A DNA stretch of 64,000 nucleotides from NCBI GenBank assembly GCA_038087875.1, contig JAXLNO010005735.1, forward strand, positions 62,001-126,000. The letters are read 5' to 3'. Positions 27,441 through 63,509 of this stretch are shown here, in pieces. Within the stretch, counting starts at the first letter, position 1. The number at the start of each line of letters is the position of its first letter. A model generated the notes under the pieces. That model worked only from the letters and a program-made list of their open reading frames with translations, did not search any database and was not told the DNA's origin. Source of the DNA: Malacoraja senta. Lineage: Eukaryota. The position numbers were made by a program, and so were the translations under genes.

Positions 27441-29192
<1,752 letters not shown>

Positions 29193-31345: not shown

Positions 31346-32797
31346 GCAAACAGGCATGTCTGGCATTTAATGAGCATTGATGTATATATTGTAGACTTTC
31401 GTCCCAAATATCTTTCGTTATGGGTTGGCCTAATTCATTTTCCCATGTGTGTCTATATAAATCCGTCGGCGGGACCTCACTATCTAAGAGGGTATTATAA
31501 ATATGAGATATTAATTTTTCTGTATTAAGATTCAAGATTCAAGATTCAAGAAGTTTATTGCCATGTCAACTGAGTTGATAGGAATTTGACTTGCCATGCA
31601 GCACACAAATAAAGATTACAACAAAGAATTTAACAGTAAACATAAAAACATCCCCCCACAATGGTTCCCACTGTGGGGGAAGGCAGCAAAGTCCAGTCCC
31701 ATCCCCAGTTCACCCATAGTCGGGGCCTATTGAGGCCTCTGCAGTCGCCGCTACGGCAGCCCGATGCCTCAGGCCCTCTCGCCGGATGATGAAGCTCCGG
31801 CGTCGGGTGAACACTCTCAGCGGCCCGGAGTGTCTGGAGCGGCTGCCTCCTCCCAGTAGACCGCGGCTCCCGAAGTCCACGAGCCGCGCTGGTCGATGCC
31901 CCGACTCTGTCGACCTCGTCGTCAGATCCCAGGCTCCGCGGTGTTCCAAGCTCAGCGCCGCTGGAAGCTCCACTGACCGCAGACCGCAGCTCTGCGATGT
32001 TAGTGCCGGCCGTCACAGCACTCCGGAGCTTACTGCACGGCGACCCGGGTTAGGCATCGCCCGCTCCGCGATGGTGCTTCAGCGCTGTGCCGCCGCCGAA
32101 GCTGAAGTCCTGGCCGGTCCCGGCAGGAAAACGCCGCTCCAGCCTGCCCGTAGGCCGCGAGGAAGGGGCGAAGATACGGCTCGGAGAAAAGCCGCATCTC
32201 CGACCAGGTAGGGACTGAGAAGAATAGTTTCCCCCTTCCCCCTACCCCCCCCCCCCCCACATAAAAAGACTAAAAGATCTCCAACCAACACTCTCAACTA
32301 ACTAAAAATAAAAAAAAGAGTGAAAAAACTAACAGCTGCTGGCGGGGCAGCCATATTCGACGGCGCCCCCTGTTGATGTTATTAGGATGTTTATTCAAAC
32401 ATTCATCAAGGATTTCTGGTTCCCTAGTTCTGTAATCTTGTGTATTTGATTTAATGTAATCTCTAATTTGTAAATATCTGAAAAAGTTATTTGAGTGTGG
32501 TCCGTAAATCTGTTGTAACCCCTGAAATTAAAGAAAAGTGCCTTTCCTATAAAGATGTCCCATCTTTTTAATTCCTTAATTTTTCCATTGTGTAAAGCCT
32601 TTATCCAACATGGAGGGTTTGAATAAAGGGTTGTTTATAATGGGGAGACAGAGTGATAAATTATCCAATTTTAAAGTCTTTTTTAATTGTTTCCAAATTC
32701 GTATACCACTATATATTATAGAATTTTCACTATAGGTTTTTTAATGCAATTTTGTGGGAGCAAACATAATCGAACCAATTTCAAAAGGTAAACAGTC
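31345..32797 (-). mobile_element. L1 ORF2 internal fragment (interrupted at 31527-32352)
   Basis: NTEKLISHIYNTLLDSEVP...HQCSLNARH and DCLPFEIGSIMFA closely match the + strand L1 ORF2 at about 54950-55530. Confidence 0.85.
31527..32352 (-). mobile_element. GC-rich non-autonomous retroposon family, copy 3 (near full length)
   Basis: (ttcaaga)n tail, family core, 5' end ggggcgccgtcgaatatggctgccccgccagcag. Confidence 0.65.
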
Positions 32798-36205: not shown

Positions 36206-37508
36206 TGTACTGAGGTAGAGTGTAAAGCTTTGTTTTGCATGCTATCCAATTGGATGAGGTAACAAAATACATATATATGATCATCAAACTCAAGTACTGT
36301 AGGTAGAGCAAAGGGGAAGGTACAGAGTGTGGCATGTAGTTCTCAGCAATGTAGCACAGCAGTTCCATTAGATAAGTGTTTCGACACGAAACGTGACACA
36401 TTCCTTCTCTCCAGAGATGCTGCCTGACCCGTTGAGTTACTCTAGCATTTTGTGTCTATCTGCGGTTTAAACCAGCATCTACAGTTCCTCCCTACATAGT
36501 TCTATAAACAAAGTCCACTGTCTTTAATGGGGTAGTGGTCAATTGGACAGTACCCTAGCTTATGGAACGATCATTCAGAAGCCTGATTTTCTCCTCGGTT
36601 ATCAAGTTTCCGAGTAAGCCATTTGGTCCTCTAACCTGCCCACCATTCAATATGACCATGGCTGACGTTCCTCAGGCATCAACTCCTGTTCGATGTCAGT
36701 TCCTCATTGCACTCAGTTCTCCAATTTAAGTTTAATTAAGTTAACTACCGCCACATTAAATGCTTCCAATGATTTTGTCTTCACAAATCTCTGGCGCCAG
36801 AGAATGACCACACTCTGCAAAAAGAGATTTTGTAAACAAATGACTGGTCTCTTTTATCTCTTATTGAAGAGGAGTGAAAATACTGCCAATTTTAAGCTTG
36901 TCCCCTCCCCAATTGACCCTCATTTCGTAACTTGTCAATTATTTATTATTGTCAATAATATGCCCTAGTGAAAAGATTTGCCGATGGTATTAGTTTATTA
37001 TTGTCACATGAACTGTGATATAGTCAAAAGTTTGTCTGTGTGTTATCCAATCAGATCATACTACACATGTGCAATCAAGCCATCCACAAGTAGAACAGTG
37101 CAAAGAGAAAAATTCTCAGAGTGCAGAATATCGGGTTACAATATCATAGCATTACAGTTACAGAGAAAGTGCAGATCAAAAAGAGTTGCAAGGATCACAA
37201 TGAGATTGGTTGGAAGATCAGGGCAACATCTTATCTTACATGAGAACCATTCAGTAGTCCAATAACAGTGGGGAAGAAGCTGTTCCTGAATTTAATGGTA
37301 CGTACTTTCAAACTTTCTTGTGTACTGTCTTAACAGGGAGCGTGCGATCCCTTTTAAACCACGTGGTTGGTTGATGGTGCCGAAAGAGGCAAAATGGGGC
37401 AGATGTGGACAGTTAACTTGGTTGTTGTAGTGGACTGAAGAATATTTTGTGGTGGGTGACTGTGCAAGTTTTACTGAAGATGAAAATAACCATCTTACTG
37501 TCTTGTAG

Positions 37509-37775
37509 TTTCCCCTGAGGTCACTCTCGCTGCCCGCCCTGATGATCATTCAGTCCTGTACTGCACTGTGTTTGGATTTTACCCACCGGCCATCAATGTC
37601 AGCTGGTTGCAGAATGGTCAACATGTCTCTGAGACCAAATCTTCTGGGGTCATACCCAACAACGATGGAACATATCATCTAAGGTCTGTCCTTGAGTATG
37701 ATCCGTATGATGGGAAACAGTATTCCTGTCATGTCGATCACAGCAGCCTGCCCGGTGGGAAGACCATCATCTGGG
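37509..37775 (+). CDS. MHC class I-like heavy chain, alpha3 (Ig C1) exon
   Basis: Acceptor ctgtcttgtAG, donor GTaaga, 267 bp, phase 1/1. SPEVTL...LYCTVFGFYPPAINVSWLQNG...SSGVIPNNDGTYHL...EYDP...YSCHVDHSSL...W contains both Ig cysteines, the GFYP motif and the class I alpha3 PNxDGTY motif. Confidence 0.95.
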
Positions 37776-38119
37776 GTAAGAACGTTAAATATTCTTTCAT
37801 AGATAATCATTATCTTCTGTTGTTTCCATTTTAATCATCATGAATACATCCCATATTCCAAGATGCTTAAACTTTCTTTGTTTAGTGGTGTTGCTCTAAG
37901 TAATCACGTAATCAGCACCCACTCTCCACATGAGCAGAAGACTTTGTCAACAGAACATTTATCAAAAGTAAATAAATAACTAATATATAAGGAAGGAGTA
38001 TTTGAGATTCTCAGTGGTGGAACTGAAATCTATGAAAGGTATGTTTAAATACAAAATGAATCTTTCCTCATGATGTGATTAACAACAAGGCACTGGGGGA
38101 GTACATGCCCCAATCTGAA

Positions 38120-38790: not shown

Positions 38791-40464
38791 TAATAAAACT
38801 AAACCTAATGAAGTAAGTTCCATGACGCAAGTTACAGATTCAGCAACGAAAAATATAACTGCCTGACAAACAGCGATCGTAGAAGTTTGATTCCAAGTAT
38901 GCTGCACTAACCTACACAAATGCTCACTTTTGAAGATTCCCTCGAACAATGCACAACTAAGGAATCTGATGTTTCACTCTGAAGACTGTTGACATACCCC
39001 AGAACTTAATTTCCAACCTATCTATGTATCATCAGCAATCTAGGCTACAGCGCCACCAGTCCCTTCATCTGCTCTTAATACCAACGATAAGTAGTTCACT
39101 TTCTTGCATTGATTCCCAACCTGCAGTTGCAGTTTCCCAACCAGAACACTCCTTTAAGACAACTCTCTGCTTGCTCTTAATTGTTTTTCCATTCATGCTA
39201 ATTATTACCCCCAATGTCATAAGCCATGTGCCTTTGCATCACTTGATCAGATATCTTATGAAAATCCAGATATTGTGGCGACATCTGGTGGTCAGGCCAC
39301 TTATTGCTAGAACCCTCGTCAGGGGAGCTGGGACTATCACGTGAGTGACAGGGTTTTGGTGGGAGTTGGTGATGAGTTAATCGCCAGTCAACTGGTGTGC
39401 CCGATAACAACGGCAGGAACTTTGCTCAAGTCCTTACTAAACGCGAGTGGGCCAAAACTGTATTTCTTTAAAAAAACATTGATTTGTTCACGACGTTTGG
39501 ATCTCTACAATATATTGTATTTCTTTTGTTTCTCATTCCAATTTTGTTACCTATTCTGCTTTTCCATCATTTTGTTTATGAATTTTAGGCTTTTCACACC
39601 TGCTGCTCGAATATACATTGTCTACGGGTTCCTGTTGCATTTTCAAAGAGTTCTAATCAATTTCTCAAACAAAGTTTGAAGAAGGGTCCCAAAACGAAAC
39701 GTCACCTGTCCATGTGTAAGAAGAAACTGCAAATGCTGGTTTACACCAAAGATGGACACAAATTGCTGGAATAACTCAGCTGGTCAGCCAGCATCTCTGG
39801 AGAAAAGGAATAGGTGATGAATCCATGTTCGCCAGAGATACTGCCTGTTCCGCTGAGTTACTCCAGCATTTTGTGTCTATTATGTATATTCTTTCCACTG
39901 ACTGGTTAGCATGAAACAAAAGCTTTTCACTGTACCTCAATACATGTGACAATAAACTAAACTAAAGCTTTTGTGTAAATCAGTATCTGCATCTCTTTCT
40001 TTCTACAATTTTCCTGATAATGCCCTGATAATGCACTTTATTGTTTTGTTATTACTTAAATGTTCTGCCATTATTGAAAGGAATCCAGCATTTTTCCCAA
40101 AACAAATGTTAGTTTATATAGGGTTAAAGCTTTCTGCTTTCAATTCACCTTCTTTCATGAATTAAGTTGTGGCTGTGATGGTGCCATATATCATAGAGTT
40201 GTACAGAACATATATTGTCCCTTTGCCATGCTGCAGAACTCCGTGATTCAAAACACCATATCATCTTATATACCTTGAAAAGCCCCAAATATAGACACAA
40301 AATGCTGGAGTAACTCAGCGGTCAGGTAACATCTCTGGAGAAAAGGAATAGGTGGCATTTCGGGTCGAGACCCTTCTTCACCCTGAAGTCTTCAGACAGT
40401 GCCCATCTATTTAGCTGCACAGCTTAACAATTGATTTGTAAAATTATGCATTCTTATTTTTCAG

Positions 40465-40572
40465 AAGGAAATAGGAAGAAAGACAGGCACATAGGCCTTA
40501 TTGCCGTGTGTGTGCTGATATTGCTGGCTATTGTCTTGGCAGTAATTGTTTTGTGGAGAAAAAAGAGGAGAG
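40465..40572 (+). CDS. MHC class I-like connecting peptide / transmembrane exon
   Basis: Acceptor ttcttatttttcAG, donor GTaaga, 108 bp, phase 1/1. (E)GNRKKDRHIGLIAVCVLILLAIVLAVIVLWRKKRR: about 22 hydrophobic residues followed by a basic stop-transfer cluster. Confidence 0.9.
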
Positions 40573-42905: not shown

Positions 42906-44126
42906 TAAATAAACTAAATTGGAAGACAGAAGGTATTTACTGATGCATCTTCACACCAGCTGTAAATGTCATAAACTGTGAGAATTGATTGCAAATGTTA
43001 TACAATATTATAAACTAAACTGGGTGATCAAAATGACAAGATGGATGAAGAGCAGAGTTTTCATTGAAATAACAGACGTGCAGCTTTCTCGAGCACTTGG
43101 CCTTGGTTGTGTAATATTTCCTCTTCAAAATACAATGTTCCCTGGCATTTCTGGTCTGAGGCACCATTCAGCAAGTATATTTCCTGAAACGGAGGTTCTG
43201 CTTTCATGGTATCAAGATGTCCAACAGCTCCAGCACCCAGATCAGAACCTTGCCAAAACTAAAAATGCAGCAACAATTTAGTCATTGAACATCAACGACA
43301 TGCATATTTGAACTGAGGCAATGGTTAGCTTATTATCACTGTAAACCAGTCGTGGTCATGGGTCTGCCATTGTGGTCACTATTAGTGAGGGTGATTAACT
43401 ATCATGTAGCAGTGAAATGGAAAAGAATTGGCTTTTCAAGCCCACGGAGCCATAGAGTCATACGGCATGGAAATGGCCACCTCAACTTGGCCATGTCAAC
43501 CAAGATGCCATGTTTAAACTACAATTTACCTGCAATTGACCCATATCTCACTGAACCTTTCCTATCTACAGTATGTACCTGTCCAAGTGTGTTCTAAATG
43601 TTTTTTAATACCTGCCTCAACTCCTTCCGCTGGAATGTTCTTCCATATTTCCACTTCCTCTGGTTCCGAGTAACTCGTTTCCTTCTCACCTTAAACCTAA
43701 GTCCTCTGGTTCTTGATTACACAAGGCTGGTTAAAAGATTCCGTGCATTCAATCTATCTATGCTCCTTGATTTTATAAACTTCTATAAGATCACCCCTCA
43801 GCCTCTTGCGTGCCAAGGACTAAAGTCCAAGCATTCTCATCCTCTCCCTGAATCACAGGCCCTGTTAATGACATCCTTCCGATAGTGGAGTGACCAAAAC
43901 TTAACACATTACTCCAAATGTGACCTCACCAACATCTTGTACAACTGTAGCAGAACATCCCAACTTTTTTATTCAGTACCTTTCTTTTAAAATCTTTTTA
44001 TTGTTTTTTTTCAAAAAAACAAAAACAAAAATAAAACATAAAAAACAGAGCAAAAAGAATAATGATAAACATAACAATGGTATTGATACATAGGGATCAT
44101 GATTACATTAATAACAGGTATAAACT

Positions 44127-47100
44127 AATAGTAAGATTAAACGAGAACTTACCTAAGTTTGAAGTTTGATCTTTATTTTATGAGGAGTTACGTAGGTGAT
44201 TACGTGAAGAACCCCGCCAGTGCGCCAATCTTCAAAGCAGCGGTGTGAAATCACAAAAAACAACAACCGAAGTAATATAGTCTCATAATAAAACGAGTAA
44301 TACAAGAACTTCAATCTGACCTTTATGATAGAGGGTAGGGTCATGGCGGGCACGTAATCACCTACGTAACTCCTCATAAAATAAAGATCAAACTTCAAAC
44401 TTAGGTAAGTTCTCGTTTAATCTTACTATTTTACTTCGGAGTCACGTGAGTTACTACGTGAAGATTTTAAAGCTTTGTGATTTCATGCCGTAGATCAATC
44501 CCGGCTTCTCACTGCATAGATTGACTCGGAACGAGAATAATCAATCATGCATTCATAATAACATTTGTACCACAAATGCAGTCATTCATTTCAATAATGA
44601 AATTAATCAGATCCCCTTTAAACCAGAGGAATTTACACAGAACTTAAAATAGTTTCTGCACACAATCCCGCATTAACAATAGGCCGATGGTAAAAATGTT
44701 GAAACATCAACTCATTGGACCATCCGGCGGCTGCGAGGATATGGTCGACGGGGACGTCTTATGCCCTGGCCGCCGACATTTCTGCTGCCCTTATCGAATG
44801 AGACGTAAAAACATAAGTGTTAATATCAGCAGCTGTTATGACTTCTTTTATCCATCAGGAAATAGTCTGTATTGAAACTCTCTTGTGTGGTTTCTTGTGT
44901 GTGATTAACAACCCAGTTTCCGTATTTCTTAAATGCTTTGTGACCTCAATGCATTGTCACAAATATGTCTTAACACAGAGACAAGGATCATTTGGATATG
45001 CTGCTAGCATAATTTTAAATCCTGTCACACCTGGCCTAATTTGCTTTAATAGGTCATAGATATAGAATGTAACCTTGTCTTCAGTTACTTCCATAGTATC
45101 TATTTGTAATTTTCTAAGTGTTTGCACTCGTTGTGCAGTCACTCATGCCATAAGCATGAATACTTTCATCCTGAGCTTGACCAAAGGTAAAGACACACTT
45201 GGTGACCATTCACGAAGTAGTTTCAGTACCACACTTACATCCCAGATTGTCATGTACCTAGGTTTCGGTGGTTTGGAATTAAAGATTCCTTTCATTAGTC
45301 TGGAAAGAATTGGGTGTGACCCAATTGGGTTTATTTCTGAATCCAGAACCAAATATGAGGGCAATGCACTTATGGCTGAATTAATTGCACTACAACTCAG
45401 ACCTTCATCATAATAGAGTTTTGACAGATTTTCTAAACATTTGAAATATCTGCAGTACTATATTGCAAATTATTTTGTACACAGAACTTTTCCCATTTCT
45501 TAATATAAGAAAGGTACTGTTTTTGGAGTGCTCCTCCTCCAGGCTGCCGTAAGCATGTCCACAGTACGCTCAGACAGTCCTCGCCCCAGAAAAGGCCTTC
45601 TTAAACCTGCAAATCAACAAATCCAAAAAATCATTAGATTAGATAGATTAGATTAGATAGCCCTTTATTGTCATTCAGACCGAAGTCTGAACGAAATTGC
45701 AACAGTCATACATAAAACAACAATAAACACATATTAACATCCACCACAGTGAGTCCACCCAACATCTCCTCACTGTGATGGAGGCAAAAGTCTTAGGTCT
45801 GCAGTCTCTTCCCTCCTCTTCTCCCTCTGCGCTGAGGCGATACCCCCCGGGCGATGTTTCCCGCGGCTCAAACACCGCGGCCCGGGGTGGTCGATATAAT
45901 GGATGTTGTTTCCCTGTTACAGGGTGCAGCAATAAATTACTCCTTTTGGGGACTTTCATCAACATTTGTGTTGTTAATTCTAATATCAACAGATACCATG
46001 GCTGTGTAGGCCAATCTGGTATTACCAATAAACCTGAATCAGCATCTTGCCTGACTTTAAGCAAACACTGGCTTATAAGGCAGAAAAGTGGAAATATATA
46101 TGACAACATATCACTCCAATGTAGCGAGAAAGAATCAATCGCCACTGCTCCTGGATCTGATTCACATGAGACATATCTCGATAGCTGATGATTCAGCCTA
46201 GATATAAACAAGTCAATGTTGGGCATTCCAAATCTGATTACTATATCATTGAATACCTCTCGATTCAACATCCATTCTTATTATCATGGAACTTTCGTGA
46301 CCTGGTGTCTGCTATCGTGTTCATTCTACCTGGTAGATAGATAGCTGAAATCCAAATATTCTTTTCAATACACCCAGTCCAAAGTTGATTAGCCATTTTG
46401 TCACATGACCCTGACTTGATTTCATCCATATCATTAATATAGGCAATTGCTGTTGTGTTTATCAATCTGAACTTGGACATGCCTTTTAGTTGTGTTAGAA
46501 CAATAACCTTGGAGTCCATAGAAACATCCTAAAACTCCAAATAGTTAACTCCCCATGTCTGCAGTAACAATGACTCTTCCTGATTCCATCTGCCTCCGCA
46601 GCTAGATGCTAAGTCAGTTTCACCCCATCCTAGTGTACTGGCATCTGTTTGTAATATCATGGAAGGTTTGTTCAATCAGCACTCTGCTGGAACTGCTTGA
46701 GACATGTAGAATCCACCACTGCAGATCAGAAACAGCATTTGTTGTCAGTTGCATGGTTCTATCAAAATGACCAACATGCATTCTCAGTGCCTGTTCTTTA
46801 ACTCTCTGCAGCTGTTGATAATGTAATGGTCCGAATTGGACTGCTGGGAATGCTGCTACTAATTTTCCCAGTACTCAAGCCACCTGTCTGATTGAGGGGT
46901 TTTGCTCGTTTACCAGATTACTGCAATCTTTAATCAACTCCACCCTTTTTTCACTGGGCAAAGTAATTTTCATTTGGACTGAATCAATTGTGAACCCCAA
47001 ATAATCAATCGAGGTACATGGTGTTAACCTTGATTCCTTTGGATGAATTAGAAACCCCAAACTTTCAAAAGTTGATTTCACAACTGCCACAGATGCTTCT

Positions 47101-49147
47101 GTTGACTGTTTTGTCCTTCCTATTATCAGCACATCATCCAAAATATGCCACTAGTACATGCCCCTGGCTTCTTAGCAACCCCAGAACTGGTTTTAATAAT
47201 TTTGTGAATATTCTGGGAGCGGACATTAACCCATTAGGCAAAGCTTTGAACTGCCATAACTGGTTCATCCATGTAAATTTAAGATACTGAATATGTATCT
47301 TTTAAATCTATAGTTGCCATATGACATGCTTCTGAAATAAGTTGTTTGGCAGTCACAAATATCTCTTTTAAAATGTTTAAATTAAACAAAAGGATTCAGA
47401 CTTGTCAAGTCTAGAATAATCCCACATCCTCAATCCTTTTTTGATCGATGGAATATATTTAACACAAATTGGTGAATTTGGTAGACTGATTCTTCAATAA
47501 CACATTTTATATATAGGGTTTGAAACGCAGCTTGAACCTCCATCACTTCTTTTTGTGCAAACCATATGACAATTACAGCAGGAAAACAGGCCATCTCGGC
47601 CTTTCAAGTCCATGCCGAAGAAGTGGAGAATTCTGCTAGGAACATGCTGGACAGGCAAATCATAATTTGGATTGAATTCAATTCGAAATCCTTGTATACT
47701 ATTCAGAATTACCACATCTGAAGTAATCTTCCAATTGTTTATAGAAGAGACATAATCTGCCGCCAACTTTTGGACTTAATCCAGTTAGTATGTTCCCATG
47801 AGAACCAGGTCCACCTACCTCTTGAGTCATTTGAGTACTCTGAGATTCCTGGATTCTCCCGGAAGCACCCTCACTGGTTCTTGCTCCCGCTGCAGGCCGC
47901 CAGCTACGTCCCTGCGTTAATGTGCGACTTGGTCCTGTCCAGGATCCGTATGACATCTGAAAGGATATTCTTCTTTACAGACTTTTCAACCATTGATGTT
48001 TTCATCAATCCTGTTTTCGCTTCATCTTCCAACTCTTTAACACATCTCTCGAGATCCTCTCCAAAGAGTAAGTTGGGTAATTGTACATTACTTGGTTTGC
48101 AGAGTGCTGCGAATTTCGGATTCATAATAGGCCGTATAGCACCTTTCCTCGGACAATTGATCTCGAAGTGGGTGCTGCATAGCAACCCCAGTGCTTTCTG
48201 ATGCAACTCCGTCATCTCTTGGCTTTTATCCGCTATTCTGGCAAAGCAGTTATTCCAGCAGCTTTAATATTCTCTGCCATTTCAATTCTTGAGTTCTCAT
48301 AATCATACTCAACTCATATTTTCTTGCATTCTCATTCATTTCCTGCTGTTCCAGCTGATGGGAAACCAAGTAATTTATTAGGGAGGCCAATTCTCTTCTA
48401 ATGGCTCTCCTGACTCTGACGGGGCAGCGAATCATACTGCCAGGGGTGGAACATCTGTACATCACGTACATCACGGCTACTGTGACAAATCACATAGAGC
48501 CTCACCGTCAGAATCAGGGTCTGAAATCTCATGACCCGTGGCACGCTCCTCATCCCTGAGGGTGCATTCTATCAGCCCTGAACCAGGAGCTGTTGAGCTG
48601 CTTCCAGCAGCTTGGTTTTCAGTACACTCTTACCTGAGTGTGCTTTGCTCCAACAGCCTATGTAGCAGGCTTTCCATTTGGGCAATACGCTTTAAAAGCA
48701 GTATCTAGCCCTGGAGCTTCCATTTCCTGGGACTCCTCCTCCGTGGCCCGTTTCAATTCGGACTTGGCCTTGCGCCCGACAGGCGTTGACTGCCCCAGGT
48801 CCACAGTCGCTATGCTCACCGCTGACGACTGTACCGGGGTTAGAGGCGGTTGGTCGCTACCCGCAGACTCCCGACTTTCCCGACTTTCTGTCGGCTGTGT
48901 CGCTCGCCTCTTCCCCCTGCCCGTTTTTTCCCATGGCATCTGTGGAAGAAATCCCCACAGACCCACAGTAAACGGACATGAAAAAATACTAAAAAAGTTG
49001 TTACTTACCTTGTAGTTAAAAAACTACAAATCCACTGAGGAGCTCTGCTCCTCACGTCCGTTTACGACAAGGCGTATGACGTAATGACGCGCAGGCGCAC
49101 TGGCGGGGTTCTTCACATAGTCACTCACGTGATTCCGAAGTAAAATA
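44127..49147 (-). mobile_element. DIRS1-type tyrosine-recombinase retrotransposon with ITRs and ICR
   Basis: gag-like region at 47770-48966, RT (DDVLIIG, YLGFTIDS), RNase H (TDASTLGWG at about 46620-46650), MT-like domain (IDLFISRLNHQL...PDWPTQPWY), YR (HPILSRLMKG, TAQRVQTL). Perfect 80-bp inverted repeat 44127-44206/44351-44430, and the 5' terminus (49090-49147) matches both the ICR and the 3' ITR. Confidence 0.93.
45632..45890 (-). mobile_element. GC-rich non-autonomous retroposon family, copy 5 (inside DIRS)
   Basis: (ttaga)n tail and core acatccaccacagtgagtccacc...ctcactgtgatggaggcaaaagtc. Confidence 0.65.
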
Positions 49148-50056
49148 TGAGACCAGTGTCAAAATACACAATGAATATAGACCTCTCCATCTCTATGTAA
49201 ATATAGTTAAATCTTTAAAAGGAAACATAAATGTAAAAAAAAAGCAAAGATAAAAAGACAAAAAGAAAAAGAAAAAATAAAACCCCCCTAAACTAAAAAA
49301 AAATTAAAAAAATTGGATAATAATAAAATAAGAATAAAAATAAAATAAATAAATAAAACAAAACAGAGCAAAACCGAATCTGAACTGAGAAATTCAACAA
49401 TTTACGTCTGTTTGTCGTCAAGTCCGTACCACCCTATGAAGGTAAAATAATTTTTATAAAGGTTAAAGAGGGAACAATTTATGTTGTATGAAAGTGTTCA
49501 ATAAATTTTCCCCAAGTCTTATCAAATTGAACCAAGGGTTCAACAATGTCACTTCTGATTTTTTCTAAATTTAAACATGATATCGTTTCAGAATACCACT
49601 GGAGTGTGGTCGGAGGGTTGGAATCTTTCCATTTAATGAAAATAAATCTTCTGGCAATTAATGTGGTAAAAGCAATCAACCGATGGGCGGAGTGGGACAA
49701 ATTAATAGAATCTAACATTGGTAACCCAAAAATTGCAGTAATAGGATGAGGTTGTAAATCTATACCTAAGACTACCGAAATAGTATCAAAAATTTATTTC
49801 CAATATTTTTCCAAAAGAGGGCAGGACCAAAACATATGGGTCAGTGATGCCACTTCAGAGTTACATCTGTCACAGGTAGGATTTATATGACCATAAAAAC
49901 GAGCTAACTTGACTTCCGGTGGCGCTATGGAGGCTTGAGTCCAGTACCAACTAGCTCCGTGCCGAAGAATCTGAAAACGGGAGAAAATCGGGTCTTACCT
50001 GCAGCGATCGCGATCTGAACGGCTGCCTGCCGCGTGACGTCATCAGGCGCGCGACT

Positions 50057-51121
50057 TTGACGGTATGTCGACGCAACATACCCCTCCCCCGTGTGCCAAA
50101 AAAACCCGTTAAAGGGAAACCACTGATGGAAGAGGTAGGCCTAACTGAGGCCTCGGCCTCAGGTACAATGACGGCCCAGGAAGACCCAACGAAGAAATCA
50201 AAGCAGAAAAAGTCTGAAATTGAAGATCTTAAAACTTTTCTCGCTGTTGAAATTAAACAGATTCAACTACAGTTGAAAACCTTTGAAGGAAAATTGAATT
50301 TTAAAGAGGAACTTAACTCTTTTAAGGTAGATTTTAAAGCAGAAATGCTTTCTACCGTTCAAGAAATACTGGAAGTCTGGAAGAGGTCGAGGGACGATGA
50401 GGTCAAGGAACAGATGGAAGTGCTGGAAGCCAGGTTCGTTTCGGTGGAATCGAACGCTAATATGGAGGTGGTCCCCATTCATCAAGCACTTGATCAACAT
50501 AGAACAGCGATAACCGAACTTGAGAAATGGGCGGCGACAAGTGAGGAAACTGTAAATCGACTCCTTATTGAAAACCAACGCCTCTCCGGTATGGTGATCA
50601 AATTAAGTGATAAGTGTACCGATTTGGAGGGGCGTCAAAGACGTAAGAATTTAAGAATTGTAGGGGTGAAAGAAGGAAGTGAGAGGGAAATGGGCCCTCG
50701 GGATTTTGTGGCAGACCTACTACAAAAAGCCTTAAAATTGGATCAAAAACCTTCACTCGGTCGAGCACATAGAGCGCAGGGGCGTCGTACACAAGATGAT
50801 GCCCATCCAAGACAAATTATAGTAAAGGTGCAACTTGATCATGAATTTGACGAGATAATGAAGAAAATCGTCCGAAGCGGACAGCTCTATTTTGAAGGTG
50901 CGAGGTTCAGTATTTACCGAGATTATCCGGCAGAGGTCTTCAAGAAAAGAGCACTGTTCACTGAGACAAAAAGAATACTGAAGAAGGTACCTGATTTGAG
51001 ATACGGCTTGCTTTACCCCGCAAGACTAAGAGTCACCTACAAGCAGAAGGAGCACTTTTTTACAGACCATGAAAAAGCACTGGAATATGCCAAAGAAATC
51101 GGGAACGTGACCACAGACTGA
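50057..51121 (+). CDS. L1 ORF1p (coiled coil + RRM/CTD)
   Basis: Uninterrupted 354-aa ORF with DLEGRQRRKNLRIVGVKEG, AHRA, IYRDYP and GLLYPARLRV. The exact start codon is uncertain. Confidence 0.9.
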   Translation: MTVCRRNIPLPRVPKKPVKGKPLMEEVGLTEASASGTMTAQEDPTKKSKQKKSEIEDLKTFLAVEIKQIQLQLKTFEGKLNFKEELNSFKVDFKAEMLSTVQEILEVWKRSRDDEVKEQMEVLEARFVSVESNANMEVVPIHQALDQHRTAITELEKWAATSEETVNRLLIENQRLSGMVIKLSDKCTDLEGRQRRKNLRIVGVKEGSEREMGPRDFVADLLQKALKLDQKPSLGRAHRAQGRRTQDDAHPRQIIVKVQLDHEFDEIMKKIVRSGQLYFEGARFSIYRDYPAEVFKKRALFTETKRILKKVPDLRYGLLYPARLRVTYKQKEHFFTDHEKALEYAKEIGNVTTD

Positions 51122-51718
51122 AGAATTTACATTACTCCTCAGGAGTCAAGGATTAACGGGACTTCACCAGATTTAAAAGGACCTTTAAAGTTCTTTTAAG
51201 AGCTTTAAGGACATTCGAAAACCGAAATGGACGGTGGACATTGGAGAAAACCGTGGTTTTTTTTTATTTTTTTTTTAAATCTTTTTTTATTTTTAGTATA
51301 AACTTTAAGAACAATAATATCATAGTTGTGACCAATTGTTATTAATCACTATTACTATTTAGTATATTCATATCTAACTATATATGTAACTGCTAATACT
51401 TATTAAATATCTATATTACTACTAAAATTATTAACATTTATATTACTCATAAAAATTTAATACTGGGTATGATCGATAACAATGATTAATAACTAACAAT
51501 CTCTGGTTAACGTAGAAATGAGTTACATACTTATATTCTACAGGAAGATGTGCAAGAGGTAATTCAGCCTACGTCATAATAAGGTTTGACGGTTTTTCTC
51601 TTTATTTTTCAATTTAAAATTAAATTTATAGATTTAGCGAAGATATTAATATGGTATGTAGAGAATAATAACGTTGTGAATTTATGTTGTTTTCGGACTT
51701 TTCTGCAGGGATATGTGC

Positions 51719-51847
51719 NNNNNNNNNNNNNNNNNNNNNNNNNNNNNNNNNNNNNNNNNNNNNNNNNNNNNNNNNNNNNNNNNNNNNNNNNNNNNNNNNN
51801 NNNNNNNNNNNNNNNNNNNNNNNNNNNNNNNNNNNNNNNNNNNNNNN
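51719..51847. other. Assembly gap (129 N) in the L1 inter-ORF region
   Basis: Run of N. Confidence 1.
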
Positions 51848-52225
51848 TTTGCTACTCCCAAAGAAGTTAATTGATTGTCAGAAATATTCTTTCTTTTTTT
51901 TTCGGGCACGGAGCTGGGAATTTTTTTTTTACAAAGGCTACGGAAGTCTTTAGAATTCTAGCCACGTTAGTGTGGCTATCACTAACTACACTAATTGTAG
52001 ATGTAGTTTTTTTTCTTTCACCCTATACTAACCAATTCTATCACTTTTTTCACTTTAAATATTTTTATAACTTAATGTTTGAATGGAACAACAAGACTAA
52101 TTCAAGGAGATGTGTTCGGAAGAGCGATGTATCTGATTTTAAATTCATCTATTCGAGGTTCGGGAGCAGGGTCAGGTTTTATGTGTTGCACCTTCTGCTC
52201 GGTTATAGACCACCTTAGAAACAAT

Positions 52226-55200
52226 ATGCAAGATGTTAATATGACAAGAGGGGGTCAGGGAATAACATTTTGTAGTTGGAATGTTAAGGGAATCAATGAA
52301 CCAATTAAGAGAGGTAAAGTTTTGGCACATCTAAATTCAATCAAAACAGATATAATATTCCTTCAAGAAACACACCTTAAAAAGGAATCTCAACATAGAC
52401 TTAAAGCTAAGTGGATCGCTGAATCATATCATTCCTCTTTTTCCCATAAGTCCAGAGGAGTTGCAATATTAATTCGTAAAGGAATACCTTTTACGAATTC
52501 ATCAACAATAGCGGATATTGATGGTAGATATATTATATTAGTTGGAGAGTTAAATGGAGAGAAAGTGATTCTTCTTAATGTATATGGGCCTAATTTTGAT
52601 AACCCTATGTTTTTTAATAAAACATTTAATATAATTCCTGAATTTTCACAATCTAAATTAATAATTGGAGGAGACTTCAATTGCACATTAGATTCATACT
52701 TAGATAGATCATCAAGGCAAAAAAAAGTAAAATCTCAATCAAGTGTATTTTTAAATTCATTTATTAATACCACTAATATTAAGGATGTCTGGAGAATTGA
52801 AAATCCAACTGGACGGGAATATTCATTTTACTCACCAGTACATAAAACATACTCAAGAATAGATTATTTTTTAGTTGACTCCACGTTTATCCCATTTACT
52901 TACAACTCAAAACACCATAATATTATAATCTCAGATCACGCACCTGTAACATTCATGATTAAATTAAATAGAATGTCCGAGAAACAAACATATTGGAGAT
53001 TTAACCCACAAATTTTGAACGAAAGATCATGCGAAGAATATCTTACTAAACAGATTCAAATATTTTTTGTGGTATATGACAACCCTGACACACCTACTTC
53101 TCTTATGTGGGAAACGTTTAAAGCGTTTGTTCGAGGTGCATTAATTTCTGCTCAAGTATTTTATAATAAAGAGAACAGGATTAAACAACAAACATTGGAA
53201 AGGGAAATCAAGCAACAAGATATAGAAAATGCGAGAATGCCATCTATTTTAAAACATAATAAAATTGCTGTATTGAAATATAAATTAAACAAAATGTATT
53301 CAGAACAAGTAATAAAACTTTATCAAAAAACAAACAATTACATTTTGAGTTTGGAGACAAACCACAAAAACTATTAGCACGTCAGTTACGAAAAATGGAA
53401 GGGGAAAAAATAATTCATAAAATTAGAACAGAGACAGGAGAATTATTAAAAATGCCCAAGGATATAAACGAAAGATTTCTCCAATACTATCATAATCTTT
53501 ATTCAACTAAAACTGTAGTACAACCAGAAGGAATAGCAGATTTTTTACTAAAATGTAATTTAAAAGGTTTAGATTCAAACGATAGAGAATTATTAGAAAG
53601 GGAGATTACGATAAAGGATATTGAGGAGTCTATTGGCTCTTTAAAAAATGGTAAAGCAGTAGGACCAGATGGTTTAGGCTCTGAATTCTATAAAAAAAAT
53701 TATGACTTGCTCTCCCCACGTTTACAAAGGCTGTATGAGCATATCTATACTCAACAGAAACTTCCAGATACTTTAAATGAATCTATAATAACACTTATTC
53801 CTAAAGTTGATAAAGATCCGGAAGATCCGGGATCATATAGAGCAATTGCACTTTTAAATACAGATCAGAAAATATTAACTAAAATACTAGCGCATAGATT
53901 AAGTACAGTGATGAATAAATTAATACACCCTGACCAAACAGGCTTTACTCAGAAACGGTACTCATATTATAATCTAAGAAGATTATTTAATATTATTTAT
54001 TCTAAGAGAATTATTAATGAAGATCTAGCAATAATCTCACTTGACGCTGAAAAAGCATTTGATCAGGTTGAATGGTCTTATTTATTTTCGGTGATGGAAA
54101 ATATGCAGCTAGGGGAGAAATTCTGCACATGGATAAAACTGTTATATACAAACCCTACGGCTAGAATATTAACAAACCAAAGGTTGTCATCTAAATTCAG
54201 CCTATCTAGAGGTTGTAGACAAGGATGCCCGTTATCTCCATTATTATTTGCGCTTGCTATTGAGCCACTCGCAGAAAGAGTTAGGGGTCATCCGGAAACA
54301 CATGGGTATAACACAAAGGACACAGTGAATAAAATTTCTCTATACGCAGATGATGTACTAATTTACATTACAAAACCAGAAATTAGTATTCCAAACTTAT
54401 TAAAGCTAATAACCCAATTTGGTTCACTCTCAGGATACAGAATAAATTGGAATAAAAGTGAAATTATGCCAATAAGGGAACACAACAAACAGATAATACA
54501 ACAATTTCCATTTAAAATAGTAAACGAAAAATTTAAATACCTAGGCATTTACGTAACTAAGATATATACATCATTATTTAAAGCAAATTTCCCCCCATTA
54601 CTGAACAAACTACATAAGAATATTCAATATTGGAAAACACTTCCTATCTCAATGGTTGGCAAAATTAATGCCATAAAAATGTTTTTTTTTACCGCAAATA
54701 TTATACCTTTTTCAGACAATTACGATATATTTGTCAAAAAACTTTAAAAAAAAATTGGATTCCATTGTTAATGATTTTATCTGGGATTATAAGAATCATA
54801 GGATAAATAAAAGACATTTGTGTAAATCAAAAATAAATGGAGGCTTGGTTTTACCCAACTTTCTGTTTTATTTTTGGGCAGTTAATATTAAAAATATGAA
54901 TTTCTGGTTGGAAGAAATAGATCAACAACTAGATTGGTTAAAAATGGAAAAGGAAGATTGTTTACCTTTTGATATCGGCTCGATATTATTTGCTACGTCT
55001 AAATTAAACAAAAAAAATTGTAGGAAAACCCTATAATATTTAGTGCTATACGAATTTGGAAACAATTAAAAAAGACATTAAAATTAGATAATTTATCACT
55101 TTTTCTTCCAATTGTGAATAACCCTTTGTTTAAGCCCTCATGGTTGGACAGGGGTTTTACACAATGGAAGAATTATGGAATTAAAAATATGGGACAACTT

Positions 55201-56040
55201 TACAAGGAATGCACCTTTCTGACATTTCAGGAGTTGCAACAGACTTATGGACTTCAAGGAAATGATTTTTTCAGATATCTTCAACTCAGAGATTATGTAA
55301 AATCGAATACTCAAAATTTTCGAATTAGAAATTCAGAAATTCTTGACGAATGTTGGAATAAACATCCTAATACAGAAAAATTAATATCTTATATATATAA
55401 TATTTTATTAGACAGTGACATTCCATCGACGGACTTACACAGACAAACATGGGAAAAAGAATTAAATCAAATAATAACGAAAGATACTTGGGAAGAAAGT
55501 TTACAACACATACATCAATGTTCATTAAATGCCAGACATTCATTAATACAATTTAAAGTAATACATAGGTTACATTATTCAAAAACAAAATTACATAAAA
55601 TCTTTCAACATATCTCACCTACATGTGATAAATGTCAACATTTAGAAGCTAACTTATCTCATATGTTTGCAAACTGTATAAAAATAAACAAATTCTGGGT
55701 AAATATTTTCAGTATAATATCTAAAGTGACCAGCACACAATTGGACCCGGATCCAAAATTAATAATACTCGGAACATTAGAATTAAATCAAACATTTAAA
55801 ACAACACAAAGAAACTTTATTGATTATAGTATAATAACGGGAAAAAAATTAATTCTAAAATTTTGGAAAGGCCCTATAACCCCCACAATCAAAATGTGGA
55901 TTATAGAAATGACGGAGACCTTAAACGTGGAAATAATCAGATTTTCCCTGTTGGACAAACAGGAATTATTCGTTGGAACATTGTCTCCCTTTATTGATTA
56001 TTTAAAGGGTCAGAATGGTTCAGCACAGGAACCTGACTAG
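52226..56040 (+). CDS. L1 ORF2p (APE endonuclease, RT, zinc knuckle), split by three 1-nt frameshifts
   Basis: SWNVKG, FLQETH, GGDFN, SRIDY, SDHAP; SLDAEKAFD, RQGCPLSP, LYADD; CDKC...HMFANC. Frameshifts at about 53330, 54690 and 55025. Confidence 0.9.
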
Positions 56041-59000
56041 CACTCGGGCTAAAGAATGGATGAAATGCTATACTCTGAAATGTACGAATATATCTCGAAT
56101 GAAGTTTTTTATTTTAATAAATTTTTCCATTCTTCTTTAACTATTTTTTTCTTTTCTGTTTTTTTTTTTTTTTTTTTTTTTCTTTCTCTCTCTTTTCTTC
56201 TCTCCCTTTTCTTTCTTTACTTCATCTATCTTTTTAGTTCTATCTAGTTTAAAAAAAACAAAAAAAGGCAAAAGGTATTGGAGACAATGTAATAATAATT
56301 GACAATATTATCAATTCAAAAATGTAAGACTGGTAATGATGTTAATAGGTTGTGTACTTATCTCCAATAAAAAATATTTTCAAAAAAAAAAAAAACGAGC
56401 TAACTTATCTTTTGACATATGAGCTCTGTGAACCACCTTGAATTGTATCAAAGCGTGTCTGCACACATTGAAGAGGTATTAACTAATTGAAGGATCCTCT
56501 CCCATTTCTCTATAGATAAAGACATTTGGAGTTCTCTTTCCCAGTCATTATTAATTTTATCAAATGTATCTATTTGTAATTTTAAAATCAACTCATGAAT
56601 AGTCGTTATTAATTCTTTCTGATAAGGGTTCAACTGTAAAAAAAAATCAAAAATTTCGGGTTGTGGTAGCGGAAAAAGGGGTAGTTCCTTTTGTCTAATT
56701 TGTAAATATCTAAAAAAGTGTGAATTAGGTAAGTTATTGGAGAGTTGTTCGAAAGACATAAAACAACACTCCAAAAACAAATCACAAAAAGCTACTAATC
56801 CCTTCCTCTTCCATAACAAAAAAAATTGATCAGTACTAGATGGTTGGAAGAGAAATTTGGATAACATCAGATAGTCCAAAAAACTTATGAAATTGAAACC
56901 GTATTCGGAACGTATGTCTTATTATTGGGTTCGTCATATATTTATTCAATCTCGTAATTGTAAAAGGTAACGAGGTCCCTAGAATAGAAGCCAATTATAG
57001 CCCTTGTAAGGAATCACGTTCTAGGTTTATCCATCCAGGGCATTGGGTATCTTCTAAATCTTTTGTCCAAAATGTTAAATAACGAACATTGACTGCCCAA
57101 TAGTAGAGTCTAAGGTTCGGCATTGCCAAACCACCAACTTTTTTTGATATCTGTAGGTATTTTTTACCTAGTCTGGCATTTTTATTCTGCCATATATATG
57201 AAGAAATTTTAGAGTCTATAATATCAAAGAAAGATTTGGCAATACAAATTGGTATCGTCTGAAATAAATACAGAAATTTAGGTAAAATGAGCATTTTAAT
57301 AGCATTGATTCGGCCAATTAAGGATAAGGACATTGGTGACCATTTAGTGAACTGATGTTTAATATGGTCAATTAAAGGAATAAAATTAGCTTTAAATAAA
57401 TCCTTGTGTTTCTTGGTGATCTTAATACCTAAATAAGTAAAACTTTCGGTAGTCAATCTAAATGGAAACTGTCCATAACTCGAAACAAAATTATATAATG
57501 GGAAAGCTCACTCTTACTAAGATTTAGTTTATAACCAGAAAAACTACTGAATTGATTAAGTAATGCTACTATTGCCGGAATAGATTTCTCAGGGTTAGAA
57601 ATAAATAATAACAGATCATCTGCATAAAGAGATAGCTTATGTGTCTTATTCCCACGGACAATACCAAAAATATTAGGGGATTCCCTAATAGCAGTGGCTA
57701 AAGTTTCCAAAGCAATATGAAATAGTAAAGGACTTAAGGGACAGCCCTGTCTAGTACCTCGAAAGAGCCTGAAAAAAGGGGATCTCTGATTATTAGTAAA
57801 TACAGAAGCCTGAGGTATAAGATATAGCAGTTTGATCCAAGAGATAAATTTTGGACCAATCTTAACTTTTTCAAGTATATTGAATAAGTATTCCATTCTA
57901 CTCTATCAATAGCCTTCTCGGCATCAAGTGAGATGACACATTCTGGGGTTTTATTAGACGCTGTATGTACAATATTTATTAATCTCCTAACATTAAAGAA
58001 TGAGTAACGATTTTTAATAAAACCTGTCTGATCTTCAGAGATAATTTGCGGTAAAATATTTTCCAATCTCATAGCTAATATTTTGGAAAGAATTTTAAAA
58101 TCTACATTTAACATTGATATAGGTCTATATGATGTCACTTCAGTAGGGTATTTATCTTTTTCTTAAATTAAAGAAATAGAAGCTTCATAAAAAGATTGTG
58201 GTAATCTATTCCTTTAAAAAAGCTTCTTTAAATACCTTGCATAGCCATGGAGACAATAAATTTGAGAAATACTTTAAAAATTCTACTGTAAACCCATCTA
58301 AACCGGGTGTTTTACCAGAATTCATTGAAAAAATTGCTCTCTGTATTTCTTCTTCCGTGATGGGTTCATCTAACAACAGAGACTCATTGTATGGTAAATT
58401 TGGTAAGTTCAGTTTCTTTAAAAACTCATGCATTATATTGGAATCAGTAGGAAAATCTGATTGGTATAGGGAGGTATAAAATTCCTGAAAGGATTTATTA
58501 ATTTCGTCATGGTCTACAGTTACTGTACCATCCCGTTTACTCACTTTAGTAATCTGACTCTTGGCCGACACTGCTTTCAATTGATTAGTAAGTAATTTAC
58601 CAGATTTTTGCCATTTATATAAAATTTACTTTTGGTTTTAAGTAACTGGTTCTCAATCGGTGATACTAATAACAAATCATATCTCAATTGAAGTTCAACT
58701 ATTCTTATAGAGCTCTAAACTAGGAGCTTTTGAATATTTTTAATCAATTTCTTTAATCTCGTCAGCCAATGTGCGTATTTCTTTTTGTGTTTGTTTTTTT
58801 AATCCCGCGGAGTATGAAATAATTTGTCCATGAATATATGCCTTAAAAGCATCCCAAACTATATCATTCGATATCTCTTCATTAGAGTTTGTCAAGAAGT
58901 AAAAAGCAATCTGATCTTTCATAAACTTAATAAAGTTTAAGTCTTGAAGCAAAGTAGCATTAAATCGCCATTGTTTAGCACTAAACTTGGAATCAGGTAG

Positions 59001-61844
59001 TTTGATCAATAGTTTCACTGGTGCATGATCAGAAATAGCAATTGCATCATACTCACATGCAATGACGAATGGAATTACCGAGAATCTAGTATAAAATAGT
59101 CGATCCTAGAATAATTATGATATACATGAGAGAAAAATGAAAATTCTTTGTCATTTGCGTGTAAGAATCTCCAAATTTCTAACATTCCCGAGTCAAGTAA
59201 AAAAGAATTAATAAAATTAGCTGATTTATTTGGAAGCACATGATCAGATGTAGACGTATCAATCGAGGGATTCAAACAGCAATTGAAGTCTCCACCCATT
59301 ATTAAAAAGTGTTCATTTAAGTTAGGAAAGGATGCAATTAACTGTTTAAAAAACTCAGGGTGATCAATATTTGGTGCATAGACATTCACCATAGTGACTT
59401 TTTGCCTATAAAGGACACCGGTAATCATCTAGAATCTGCTATATGGATCAGAAATTGTTTCATGGTGAACAAACGGAATTGAGGGGTCGATAAAAATAGA
59501 GACTCCTTTCACCTTAGCCTGTGAATTTGAATGAAACTGCTGTCCTCTCCAAAACTTGAAAAATCGTGACTTGTCATCTTGCCTTACATGAGTTTCCTGA
59601 ACAAAGATAATCTGAGCATTTAGTCTGTGAAGAACTTTTTAAAAAAATCCTCTTAATGGGATGGTTCAAGCCATTCACATTCCATGAAAGGAACTTTATC
59701 CATATTGCTTGTAAAAATCATGTGGGATGTAATGGGTTAATTTCTTGAAGCCTAAAAGTTCATAATACTGGAAGAAGAAAAATCTAGGGCGGAGCCAGGT
59801 GACGACATTTCAGCCAATTTTGTAGTTCAGAATTTGCACAAATGGAGATCACTAAATAGGGAACAAAAGACCCCTCCCCCTCCCCCTCCCACCCCTGTAG
59901 AACCCCAAACTGACCAAAAGACAGTCAGCAAACTACCTAATCCCCTCCCCGATCCCATCTCTCCCAGTAACAGCGCTCAGCATAAAATGAATAATATTTA
60001 ACCACTACGTCATAACACATTCGTTATTATCTCTTTGAGAGAGAAGAAAAAAAATACAGACTGGCATGGAATGCTGCTTATTATTATCCAAGGTCAAAAT
60101 ATGAAAAACAAGAACTGCGTTCTCTTAGTTTGTCTAACGACAGGGGAACACGAATTAACAAAGAAATTCTTAAAAGAATATATATAAAAGAAAAACAACT
60201 CGTCCAGTTAAATTCTTAATCATTACCAAACGAAATGTTGTCAAAAGAGGAACAGTAAATCTCCAATTATAACTTAATCAGCTATCAATTACTCCCCTTC
60301 CTCGTCGTAGCTCTTCAGACGCAGCTGGAGGCGTCTTGAGGACTGTTAAAAAATCGAAAGTTACCATTGAAAAGCCGAATACGCAATCTAGCTGGTGATA
60401 ATAGAGCTGGGCGCAGTTTTTTCTTATACAAATCAGACATTACATTATAAAAAGTCTTTCTTATTTCCAAAAGCTCGTAACTATAATCAGGGACAAACCG
60501 AAACTTACATCCTTCGTATTCAACCACACCAAACTTTTTTGCTGCCTGGAGAATATTCTCCTTCATTTGAAAAAAATGAAACCGAATGATCAAGTGCTCG
60601 GTTTATTACCGGATTTCTTCCCAATCCTGTGTGCCTTATCCAGGAACAGAAGGTTTTCATTGTGCTCAATGTTGAATGTTTCCTTTATCATTTTAGAAGC
60701 ATATTTTATAACGTTATCTCCTCCTTGGCCTTCCGGCAAACCAACAATTCATCAATTCAAACGACGGCTTCTGTATTCTAAGTCCATATTTTTAGACTTG
60801 TATTGCTGAAGTTCTCAAGTGTTTTCATTCATTCTCCGTTCCAATTTTTCAAATTTCAAATCTCTCTCCTGTCCCAGGGTGCGCAAGATATCAATTTGAT
60901 CCTTTTGTTCACGAAGTTCATCTTGTAACAAAAACAGTTTTCCTTGGACTTCCTTCAATTTGGTCAACTCCTTTCACCATTTCTTCCAAACTGCCAAATC
61001 TTGTTTTCGTTTCATTTTTCAGCTCATTTTTCAATTCATCGTTCATTTTCGATATTGCTTCTATGATGCTGGAATCAGAAGCTACAGCTGTGGTTGTGGC
61101 TTTCCCCAGTTCCTTCTTTGGGGATCCTCCTTTCCTTCTTGTCTCCATCCTGTTCACGATTAAGGCGTGTAAATGTGTTATCAACACTTTATGAACAGTT
61201 AGACGATGTCTTGAAGTCAAATAGTCACCAGTAACATTGAAAGAGTGGTCAGTGGAAGTTAAAAGTTAAGGGAGCAAACGAGTTTGCAACCTTACAGCAT
61301 GCTGCCACTAGGAGAGTCTAGTTATTGACATGTTATTGATGTTCATGATTATTCTGTTCTTTGTGCCTGGCCATTTTGACTTTGTCACATTTTTCTTGGT
61401 TTATGATATTGTACAAGATTTGCAATCACACCTCCCAATTGACTAAAATTATCCCAATTAACTAAATGCCTACTATGGCATTTAAATTATTGCATTATAT
61501 TCAGTGCAGGGTAGAAGCTGCAGTTTTTAAAAGGGCAAGTTTTTATTACATACTATGTGGTGTGTGCCTGGAAAGCACTGCCAGGGATGGTGGCGTCTGG
61601 GGTGCACCTTTGTGGTGCATGGAGATGCAGGGGTTTGAGGGACATGAATCATTTGCAGGCAGATGCTGCCTAACTGGTGTCTGTCCGACTGATCTGGAGG
61701 GATCTGATGGTCAGGCAGGGAATATTTCCAGTGACCCAATGGTGCTGAGTTCGCTGAATTTTACGGTGAATGGGAATGCCCCTGTAATAGAGGAACAGGT
61801 CCTTTGTCCAACAACGTTTGTGCTGAACATGACGCAACCTGAGG

Positions 61845-62350: not shown

Positions 62351-62482
62351 CTTTATATCTGGAAGGAAGATGTTATGTGGGATGAATCAACAGTTAAAGC
62401 AAATAAACTAGTTGCATCTTTCTGAGTTCTGTTCTCTGCTATGCCATTTCTTTGTTGTCTAATATTTAATTTCCCTCCTCAG

Positions 62483-62523
62483 ATTATCAAAATATTCAAC
62501 CAAAGCAGAACGTGCACTGCTAA
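62483..62523 (+). CDS. Candidate terminal cytoplasmic exon of the class I-like gene (DYQNIQPKQNVHC*)
   Basis: Strong acceptor atttaatttccctcctcAG. Phase 1 matches the TM exon. Gives a YxxI motif then TAA, with ATTAAA at about 62556 and AATAAA at 62575-62580. Its link to the TM exon across a 21.9 kb intron is inferred. Confidence 0.62.
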
Positions 62524-63509
62524 CCAATCGCTGAGTAGAAGATTTCATGGATGTGATTAAAATGCAGGAACTGAAATAAATGGAAAGAGTTAAATTAAGT
62601 TTATCAAACATGACAGAAATTCTCAATAGACTGCCCTGCATTTGTACAAATTAGAGCTATCTAGCAATTTATGTTGATAACAGCTGATATGACTGAGGCC
62701 TCAACTCCTTTACTGTGCTTATTCCACATAAGACACAATTCCCTGGTCTTTTAGAATATATCCACGCATTATCCATCAATTCACCACCACATCATGCCTC
62801 TTTAATACATTCATAAGGTTAACTCTGTTTCTTGTCATCTCCAAGGGACACGGAACCAATGATTTCAGCCATTCATGGTTAGGCAACACTTGCTTATTCC
62901 AGAAATCTCTTCTAGCTGATATCAAATATTAATATATCCTTTCTTAAATTTGAGGACCAAGCTGTGCACAGTGCTCCTGATATGTCCTTAGCAACATCAT
63001 GTACCATAATTACAATAGTAACCTACTTTGAACGCCAATATGCTACTCACCTTCTGAGTTGTGTGCTGCATCGACCTGCTGGCTTTTTGTTTTGCACTTT
63101 AAGCACTTGAATCTCTTGTACTCCACTCATTTGCAATCTCACTCCATTTAGATAATAGCTTCCTTTGAATTGCTCTTACCAGAGTGTGTGAGCACATATT
63201 TTCCATTATTAAACTCCATTTGCCATGTTTATGTTCATCTAACAAAGAGTCATATAGCCATATAGCATGGAAGTAGGTACTTCAGCCTAATGCTCCTAGC
63301 TGAACAAGATGCTACATCTAGGTTAGTCACATTTGCCAGCCTTTGGGCCCACATTCCTCTCAACATGTTCTATCCATGTACCTGTCCAAGTGTCTTTTCA
63401 ATGTTGTTATTCTGCCTTCGCTGGCAGCTCATTCCATACACCCAGTAACCTCTTCGTAGAAAAGGTTGCCTCTCAGGTTCCTACTAAATCTTCCTCCTCA
63501 CCTTAAACC

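Follow-up and report, generated by a model that had tools for sequence, protein, structure and literature searches.

Last coding exon of a skate gene from a non-classical MHC class I lineage of elasmobranchs: a putative tyrosine sorting signal in the cytoplasmic tail, and the probable loss of alpha2

The window analysed here is a stretch of 64,000 nucleotides from Malacoraja senta (GenBank assembly GCA_038087875.1, contig JAXLNO010005735.1, positions 62,001 to 126,000 of the forward strand), with a GC content of 0.42, an observed/expected CpG ratio of 0.51 and a high content of LINE and Penelope-type repeats. Four exons of an MHC class I gene can be seen on its forward strand. The alpha1 exon (17110 to 17370, phase 1 to 1) reads PHTLIYYYT...RRQNETA and corresponds to positions 152-414 of L001, a 3,455-nt RNA contig of Leucoraja erinacea from run SRR11241640. 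The alpha3 exon (37509 to 37775, also phase 1 to 1) encodes an Ig C1-set domain (Pfam C1-set, E 3.3e-20) and matches L001 689-957 at 95%. The connecting peptide, the transmembrane (TM) segment and the basic stop-transfer cluster are encoded together at 40465 to 40572, EGNRKKDRHIGLIAVCVLILLAIVLAVIVLWRKKRR plus a G (L001 957-1065 at 94.5%), and the coding part of the last exon lies at 62483 to 62523. All four exons are open with good splice sites, and comparison with L. erinacea gives a dN/dS of 0.47 over 221 codons, a value compatible with decay as well as with function. The closest relatives are found in Leucoraja erinacea, Amblyraja radiata and Rhinoraja longicauda; at the protein level the window exons share 92-93% identity with the genes of A. 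radiata and R. longicauda, with 79 of the 86 alpha1 residues identical to A. radiata.

The TM exon ends in ...TGG AGA AAA AAG AGG AGA G at a donor G|gtaaga, and the exon at 62483 is preceded by a 16-nt tract, at least 12 of it pyrimidines, and then cag. With the carried-over G the last exon reads (G)AT TAT CAA AAT ATT CAA CCA AAG CAG AAC GTG CAC TGC TAA, and the splice gives ...WRKKRR-DYQNIQPKQNVHC-stop, with the TAA at 62521-62523 and consensus splice sites on both sides. The first-pass annotation had joined the same two exons and read the same tail, and was correct to the base. The predicted cytoplasmic tail, RKKRR-DYQNIQPKQNVHC, is 18 residues long and contains a YxxPhi motif, YQNI. Evidence that the join is used comes from L001, which aligns to the A. 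radiata genome in six separate blocks across 78 kb and is therefore spliced RNA. In the window it aligns to alpha1 (17108-17370), alpha3 (37507-37775) and the TM exon (40464-40572), and then passes directly to 62481-62763 and on to 63509, so the join 40572^62483 is used in the close relative L. erinacea.

Annotated relatives end in the same way. The A. radiata RefSeq protein XP_032898133 ends RKKRRDYQNIPPNQNVPC, L. erinacea isoform X6 ends RKNRRDYQNIQPNQNVPC, as do all three 334-aa L. erinacea proteins from Logan contigs (a 90%-identity cluster), and ten R. longicauda paralogues end RKKRKDYQTIQPNQN[MR]RC. In DNA, the 62483 exon with its acceptor can be aligned base for base to the exon that closes the coding sequence in A. 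radiata and in R. longicauda, and exon, acceptor and stop align column for column across three skates and the cDNA. The first-pass claim that this is the last exon has thus been borne out for the gene family, both by the spliced L. erinacea contig and by the annotated orthologues. Differing C-terminal ends are found among the relatives in predicted isoforms or paralogues (L. erinacea X5 and X1-X4, Pristis P0158 and P0161, Heptranchias X2); a tblastn search with the alternative tail of L. erinacea X5 found no matching exon in the window. A read-through tail from the last intron, RKKRRGKMEKL-stop, was considered and rejected, as the relatives give it no support.

Downstream of the stop, the 3'UTR can be followed from 62524 to 63509, the limit of L. 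erinacea cDNA homology (L001 1064-1347 and 1555-2310 align to window 62481-62763 and 62762-63509). The polyA signals that had been placed after the tail are present, with ATTAAA at about 62557 and AATAAA at about 62577, shortly after the stop, but they are not conserved: both hexamers are point substitutions peculiar to the window, the relatives having GATTGAAATG and GAACTATATGG there, and the L. erinacea 3'UTR extends more than 2 kb beyond the hexamer sites. If the ATTAAA or AATAAA of the window were used, the 3'UTR would be shortened from more than 2 kb to less than 100 nt.

The last intron measures 21.9 kb in the window, against 6.8 kb for A. radiata and 4.4 kb for R. longicauda, because of a 17.3-kb LINE-rich insertion (43982 to 61328, containing an N run at 51719-51847). 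Its limits were set by broken collinearity, as the collinear blocks on either side (42947-43982 and 61329-61710) adjoin in both the A. radiata locus (L002 78554/78587) and the R. longicauda locus (L003 31295/31342). Open reading frames of the insertion, on both strands, carry LINE endonuclease and reverse-transcriptase domains. One near-complete element lies on the + strand, with a 354-aa ORF1-like frame (50057-51121, no Pfam match), an endonuclease (52079-53377), a reverse transcriptase (53395-54747) and a 308-aa frame extending to 56040; a second, broken reverse-transcriptase element occupies 56448-59428 on the - strand.

Closer to the 5' end, the gene in the window lacks its alpha2 exon. 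Neither tblastn with four relatives nor short-word blastn with the alpha2 part of the cDNA found one in the window, which consequently does not hold a complete leader-alpha1-alpha2-alpha3-TM-tail gene. In the two skate loci, alpha2 lies in a block of 535 bp that is 92% alike between them (A. radiata L002 45301-45831, R. longicauda L003 20965-21499) and has no counterpart in the window. The intron flank 5' of alpha2 (L003 20841-20965; L002 44558-44963) does match, at window 31023-31332 (31023-31144 for the L003 part), and ends at about 31144-31332, at the start of the expected alpha2 site (31144 to 32437). Repeat-like sequence follows, and collinearity with the two loci resumes near 32437-32795. 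Within the sequence that replaces alpha2, 31630-32300 is GC-rich, contains long frames of 128-163 aa that are open on either strand, and matches A. radiata L002 15250-15844 at 70%, so that it is repeat-like. We considered whether alpha2 might be hidden in the N run at 26017-26351 and rejected this, since collinearity puts it after 31144. Next to this N run, within a window-specific insertion of the alpha1-alpha3 intron, open frames of 120 and 203 aa at 27600-29200 look by eye like a hAT-like DNA-transposon transposase, with no Pfam match at E 0.001. In A. radiata the leader exon lies 32 kb upstream of alpha1 and in R. longicauda 15 kb, and by collinearity it is expected 9-14 kb before the window start; its absence therefore means nothing, and a lost leader exon was likewise rejected.

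As all exons run from phase 1 to phase 1, a transcript joining alpha1 to alpha3 would stay in frame. The product of such a transcript could not form a class I groove. Because the alpha2 block is replaced by repeat-like DNA, the window copy is probably a pseudogene, a dead or crippled member of a multi-copy skate family, although the loss of alpha2 rests on the assembly of a multi-copy, repeat-rich region in which collapse or misjoin is possible. The first-pass annotation had spoken of a molecule trafficking from this locus; such a molecule is probably not made there, alpha2 being missing.

The lineage to which the gene belongs can be recognised from a solved structure. The window alpha1 matches chain A of PDB 9CH4 (9ch4_A) at E 6.4e-37 and 68% identity, the next chains following only at 3e-09, and for the A. 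radiata orthologue the match to this chain extends over alpha1-alpha3, at E 8.6e-118. The 9CH4 chain is entered as an 'Ig-like domain-containing protein' of 268 aa, and its closest resemblance is to orectolobiform sequences. An exhaustive search with alpha1, followed by a search with its best match, returned full-length relatives from sharks, rays and skates only; a homologous-protein search with the alpha3 open frame gave no match. By sequence clustering, the window gene belongs to the 9CH4-type elasmobranch MHC-Ib lineage, sharing the six-exon layout and the tail common to annotated skate, ray and shark genes, and differing in the absence of alpha2 and in a last intron swollen by LINE sequence.

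The lineages UFA and UGA go back to Flajnik, Ohta, Verissimo and colleagues. UFA has been mentioned as an unpublished elasmobranch lineage 'very similar to CD1' in its binding region (PMC10751288), and UFA and UGA together as two CD1-like lineages for which a crystal structure and mass spectrometry suggest lipid binding, cited as a personal communication (PMC12562908). The match of the 9CH4 chain to the A. radiata orthologue places the window gene in one of these two lineages; in the searchable literature neither name was found tied to a sequence. The suggestion in the first-pass annotation of a non-classical, possibly non-peptide role agrees with these published remarks on UFA and UGA as CD1-like lipid binders (PMC10751288, PMC12562908). 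Both the lineage and its resemblance to CD1 have thus been reported before. Reviews describe the CD1-like lineage as single- or low-copy in sharks, while R. longicauda has at least 10 paralogues (P0151, P0178-P0186) of at least 90% identity on one chromosome, which indicates that the lineage has expanded in skates.

By closest sequence relationship, the gene falls outside the CD1 family. With a Scyliorhinus member as query, no CD1 chain was found among the best 60 solved-structure matches; behind 9CH4, MR1 and classical class I rank highest among the solved relatives, and zinc-alpha2-glycoprotein also outranks CD1. The lineage is, on these sequence comparisons, nearer to MR1 and classical class I than to CD1. 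In the A. radiata orthologue, two of the eight peptide-terminus anchors read as replaced in the alignment (T143 to F, Y159 to L). The lineage may work like CD1, but membership in the CD1 family does not follow from its sequence.

The part of the tail that is kept across the lineage is narrower than the YQNI of the window. In the window, a 22-residue hydrophobic stretch is followed by RKKRR and then YQNI, and the sequence has what defines a YxxPhi signal: a Tyr with a bulky hydrophobic residue at +3, in a cytosolic tail and near the membrane. The Tyr, with Ile or Val at +3, is kept in 11 of the 11 other shark, ray and skate species examined, and in all relatives it follows the TM Trp at position 6 or 7 (position 7 in the window). 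The tails end in AYENIRANQNLRC in Pristis, DYESIRAHRRVNC in Hemitrygon and DYENIPAHRNVNC in Mobula, and in AYNAV in Heterodontus, GYNVI in Stegostoma, DYNTV in Scyliorhinus, DYNVV in Cetorhinus and EYNAV in Mustelus. The motif takes the form YQTI in R. longicauda, and YENI, YESI, YNAV, YNVI, YNTV and YNVV are also found among the relatives, so that the two middle residues vary freely. The first-pass annotation had proposed conservation of YQNI as a check, and had named lack of conservation of the exon in related species as what would count against its reading. The latter is not what was found, the YxxPhi motif being kept in 11 other species; of YQNI, the Tyr and the +3 Ile/Val are conserved in these species at a constant spacing from the membrane, but the middle residues are not. 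Because these residues vary among orthologues, the exact identity of YQNI with human CD1b is, on the alignment, a coincidence, and the conserved feature is a generic YxxPhi motif.

The tails of sharks and of rays and skates differ after the motif. In sharks the motif itself forms the C-terminus, about 7 residues from the membrane, whereas rays and skates have eight extra residues after it, the last of which is always Cys. A Q/R-N pair two to four residues before the terminal Cys is also conserved in all rays and skates examined and in none of the sharks; sharks have neither feature because their tail stops at YxxPhi. Lipidation of the terminal Cys, as raised in the first-pass annotation, is speculative. 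The extension with its invariant Cys could, though we think it improbable, be a second, so far undescribed signal (for acylation or C-terminal docking) that modifies routing.

Comparable tails occur in CD1 proteins. Endosomal localisation makes use of a tyrosine sequence in CD1b, CD1c and CD1d alike, and the mouse CD1d tail, RRRSAYQDIR, binds AP-3 in a Tyr-dependent manner through YQDI (PMC2194227), in line with the first-pass statement that YxxPhi motifs after a basic cluster recruit adaptors. The human CD1b tail was likewise rightly described there as carrying YQNIP after basic residues, as the hCD1b reverse primer in the same paper decodes to RRSYQNIP-stop (PMC2194227). The elasmobranch tail resembles those of CD1b, CD1c and CD1d in being short, with a basic stop-transfer cluster followed by YxxPhi, and in the window it shares the letters YQNI with hCD1b; it differs in that the x residues vary among orthologues and that rays and skates add their Cys-ended extension. 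Lysosomal YxxPhi signals such as the LAMP-1 sequence GYQTI are laid out in a similar way, in a short tail whose motif lies 6-7 residues from the membrane, at its C-terminal end or close to it. LAMP-1 belongs to an unrelated protein family and the resemblance is limited to the signal, which is matched by YQTI in R. longicauda, by the Gly before the Tyr in Stegostoma and by the position of the shark motif at the very C-terminus.

In intact members of the family, the tail would most likely act as a tyrosine-based sorting signal. Recognition by the mu subunit of AP-2 would lead to uptake from the surface, and perhaps recognition by that of AP-3 to late endosomes and lysosomes; like CD1b, CD1c and CD1d, the molecule would then sample ligands in endosomes. 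We infer adaptor binding and endosomal routing for the family from its sequences; the idea of endosomal routing in the first-pass annotation would accordingly apply to the family and, with the qualification given above, to the window locus. Taken together, these findings identify 62483-62523 as the genuine final coding exon of a skate gene copy that belongs to a non-classical MHC class I lineage of elasmobranchs. We consider it likely that the tail serves as a tyrosine sorting signal in intact members, and that the copy itself is a pseudogene.

Three other explanations bear on different parts of this reading. The frame at 62483 might be no exon at all but a chance open frame behind a chance AG, and 56 of the 1,337 AG sites downstream of the TM exon would indeed yield a tail of 4-30 residues with a YxxPhi motif; 62483 is the only one of these candidates with a pyrimidine tract and a Tyr within the first four residues. 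The motif by itself is not above chance, and it is homology that establishes the exon. The exact join in the spliced RNA contig of a related skate, with the exon kept in the DNA of three skates and in the protein of 11 species, already refutes a chance frame, to which we attach practically no probability. A working, intact copy that lacks alpha2 only because this highly repeated family was misassembled or left with a gap is also improbable, if far less so. The window has two N runs, every visible exon is open with consensus splice sites, and copies as numerous and as similar as the R. longicauda paralogues, at least 10 of at least 90% identity on one chromosome, could have been collapsed in assembly. 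Against this, the N run at 26017-26351 sits in an insertion found only in the window, 5' of the conserved flank running up to alpha2; window segments 24368-24545 and 29317-29401 match R. longicauda 20413-20627 and 20619-20703, which are adjacent; and after 31144, where alpha2 is expected, the sequence is continuous and unrelated.

The third explanation accepts the tail and assigns its Tyr motif to a purpose other than lysosomal routing, such as AP-2 endocytosis and recycling, basolateral sorting or phosphotyrosine docking, and we regard it as possible though not the likelier account. Human CD1d has a YxxPhi motif without use of AP-3 (PMC2194227), and the compartment is therefore not determined by the motif alone; YQNI and YENI both fit pYxN. 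Only the Tyr and the +3 residue are conserved, however, with YQTI and YESI among the orthologues and YN[ATV][VI] in sharks, and the layout of the tail is that of lysosomal YxxPhi signals such as the GYQTI of LAMP-1. YxN resembles a Grb2 SH2 site; a conserved site of this type was rejected because YxN is not kept among orthologues, and an ITIM was rejected because the -2 residue is Arg.

If the conserved tail does carry these molecules through endosomes, sharks and rays would possess the two components of a CD1-like system, a greasy groove together with a signal to lipid-loading compartments, which bears on the age of lipid antigen presentation. To that question the window locus, as one more and probably dead copy, adds little. 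The tyrosine tail of this elasmobranch lineage could even be homologous to that of CD1 rather than convergent with it, both then sharing a gene layout in which the tail has a short exon of its own behind the TM exon, but we think this doubtful. Were the tails homologous, endosome-sampling lipid presentation with a sorting signal would predate the split of cartilaginous and bony vertebrates.

Some gene models of L. erinacea depart from the common structure. RefSeq isoforms X1-X4 (P0152, P0166, P0167, P0169) combine the class I gene and a GPR139-like receptor downstream of it in one model, and in isoform X3 the leader is joined directly to alpha2, with alpha1 skipped. The X1-X4 fusions are probably read-through or model artefacts, but they still show a GPR139-like gene to be the neighbour. 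In the window, reading through the alpha3 donor gives GKNVKYSFIDNHYLLLFPF-stop at 37776-37834, and the L. erinacea protein XP_055486429 (P0171, 311 aa) ends with exactly the same intron-encoded string, GKNVKYSFIDNHYLLLFPF; this protein is apparently an unspliced or truncated model, though it might be a soluble form.
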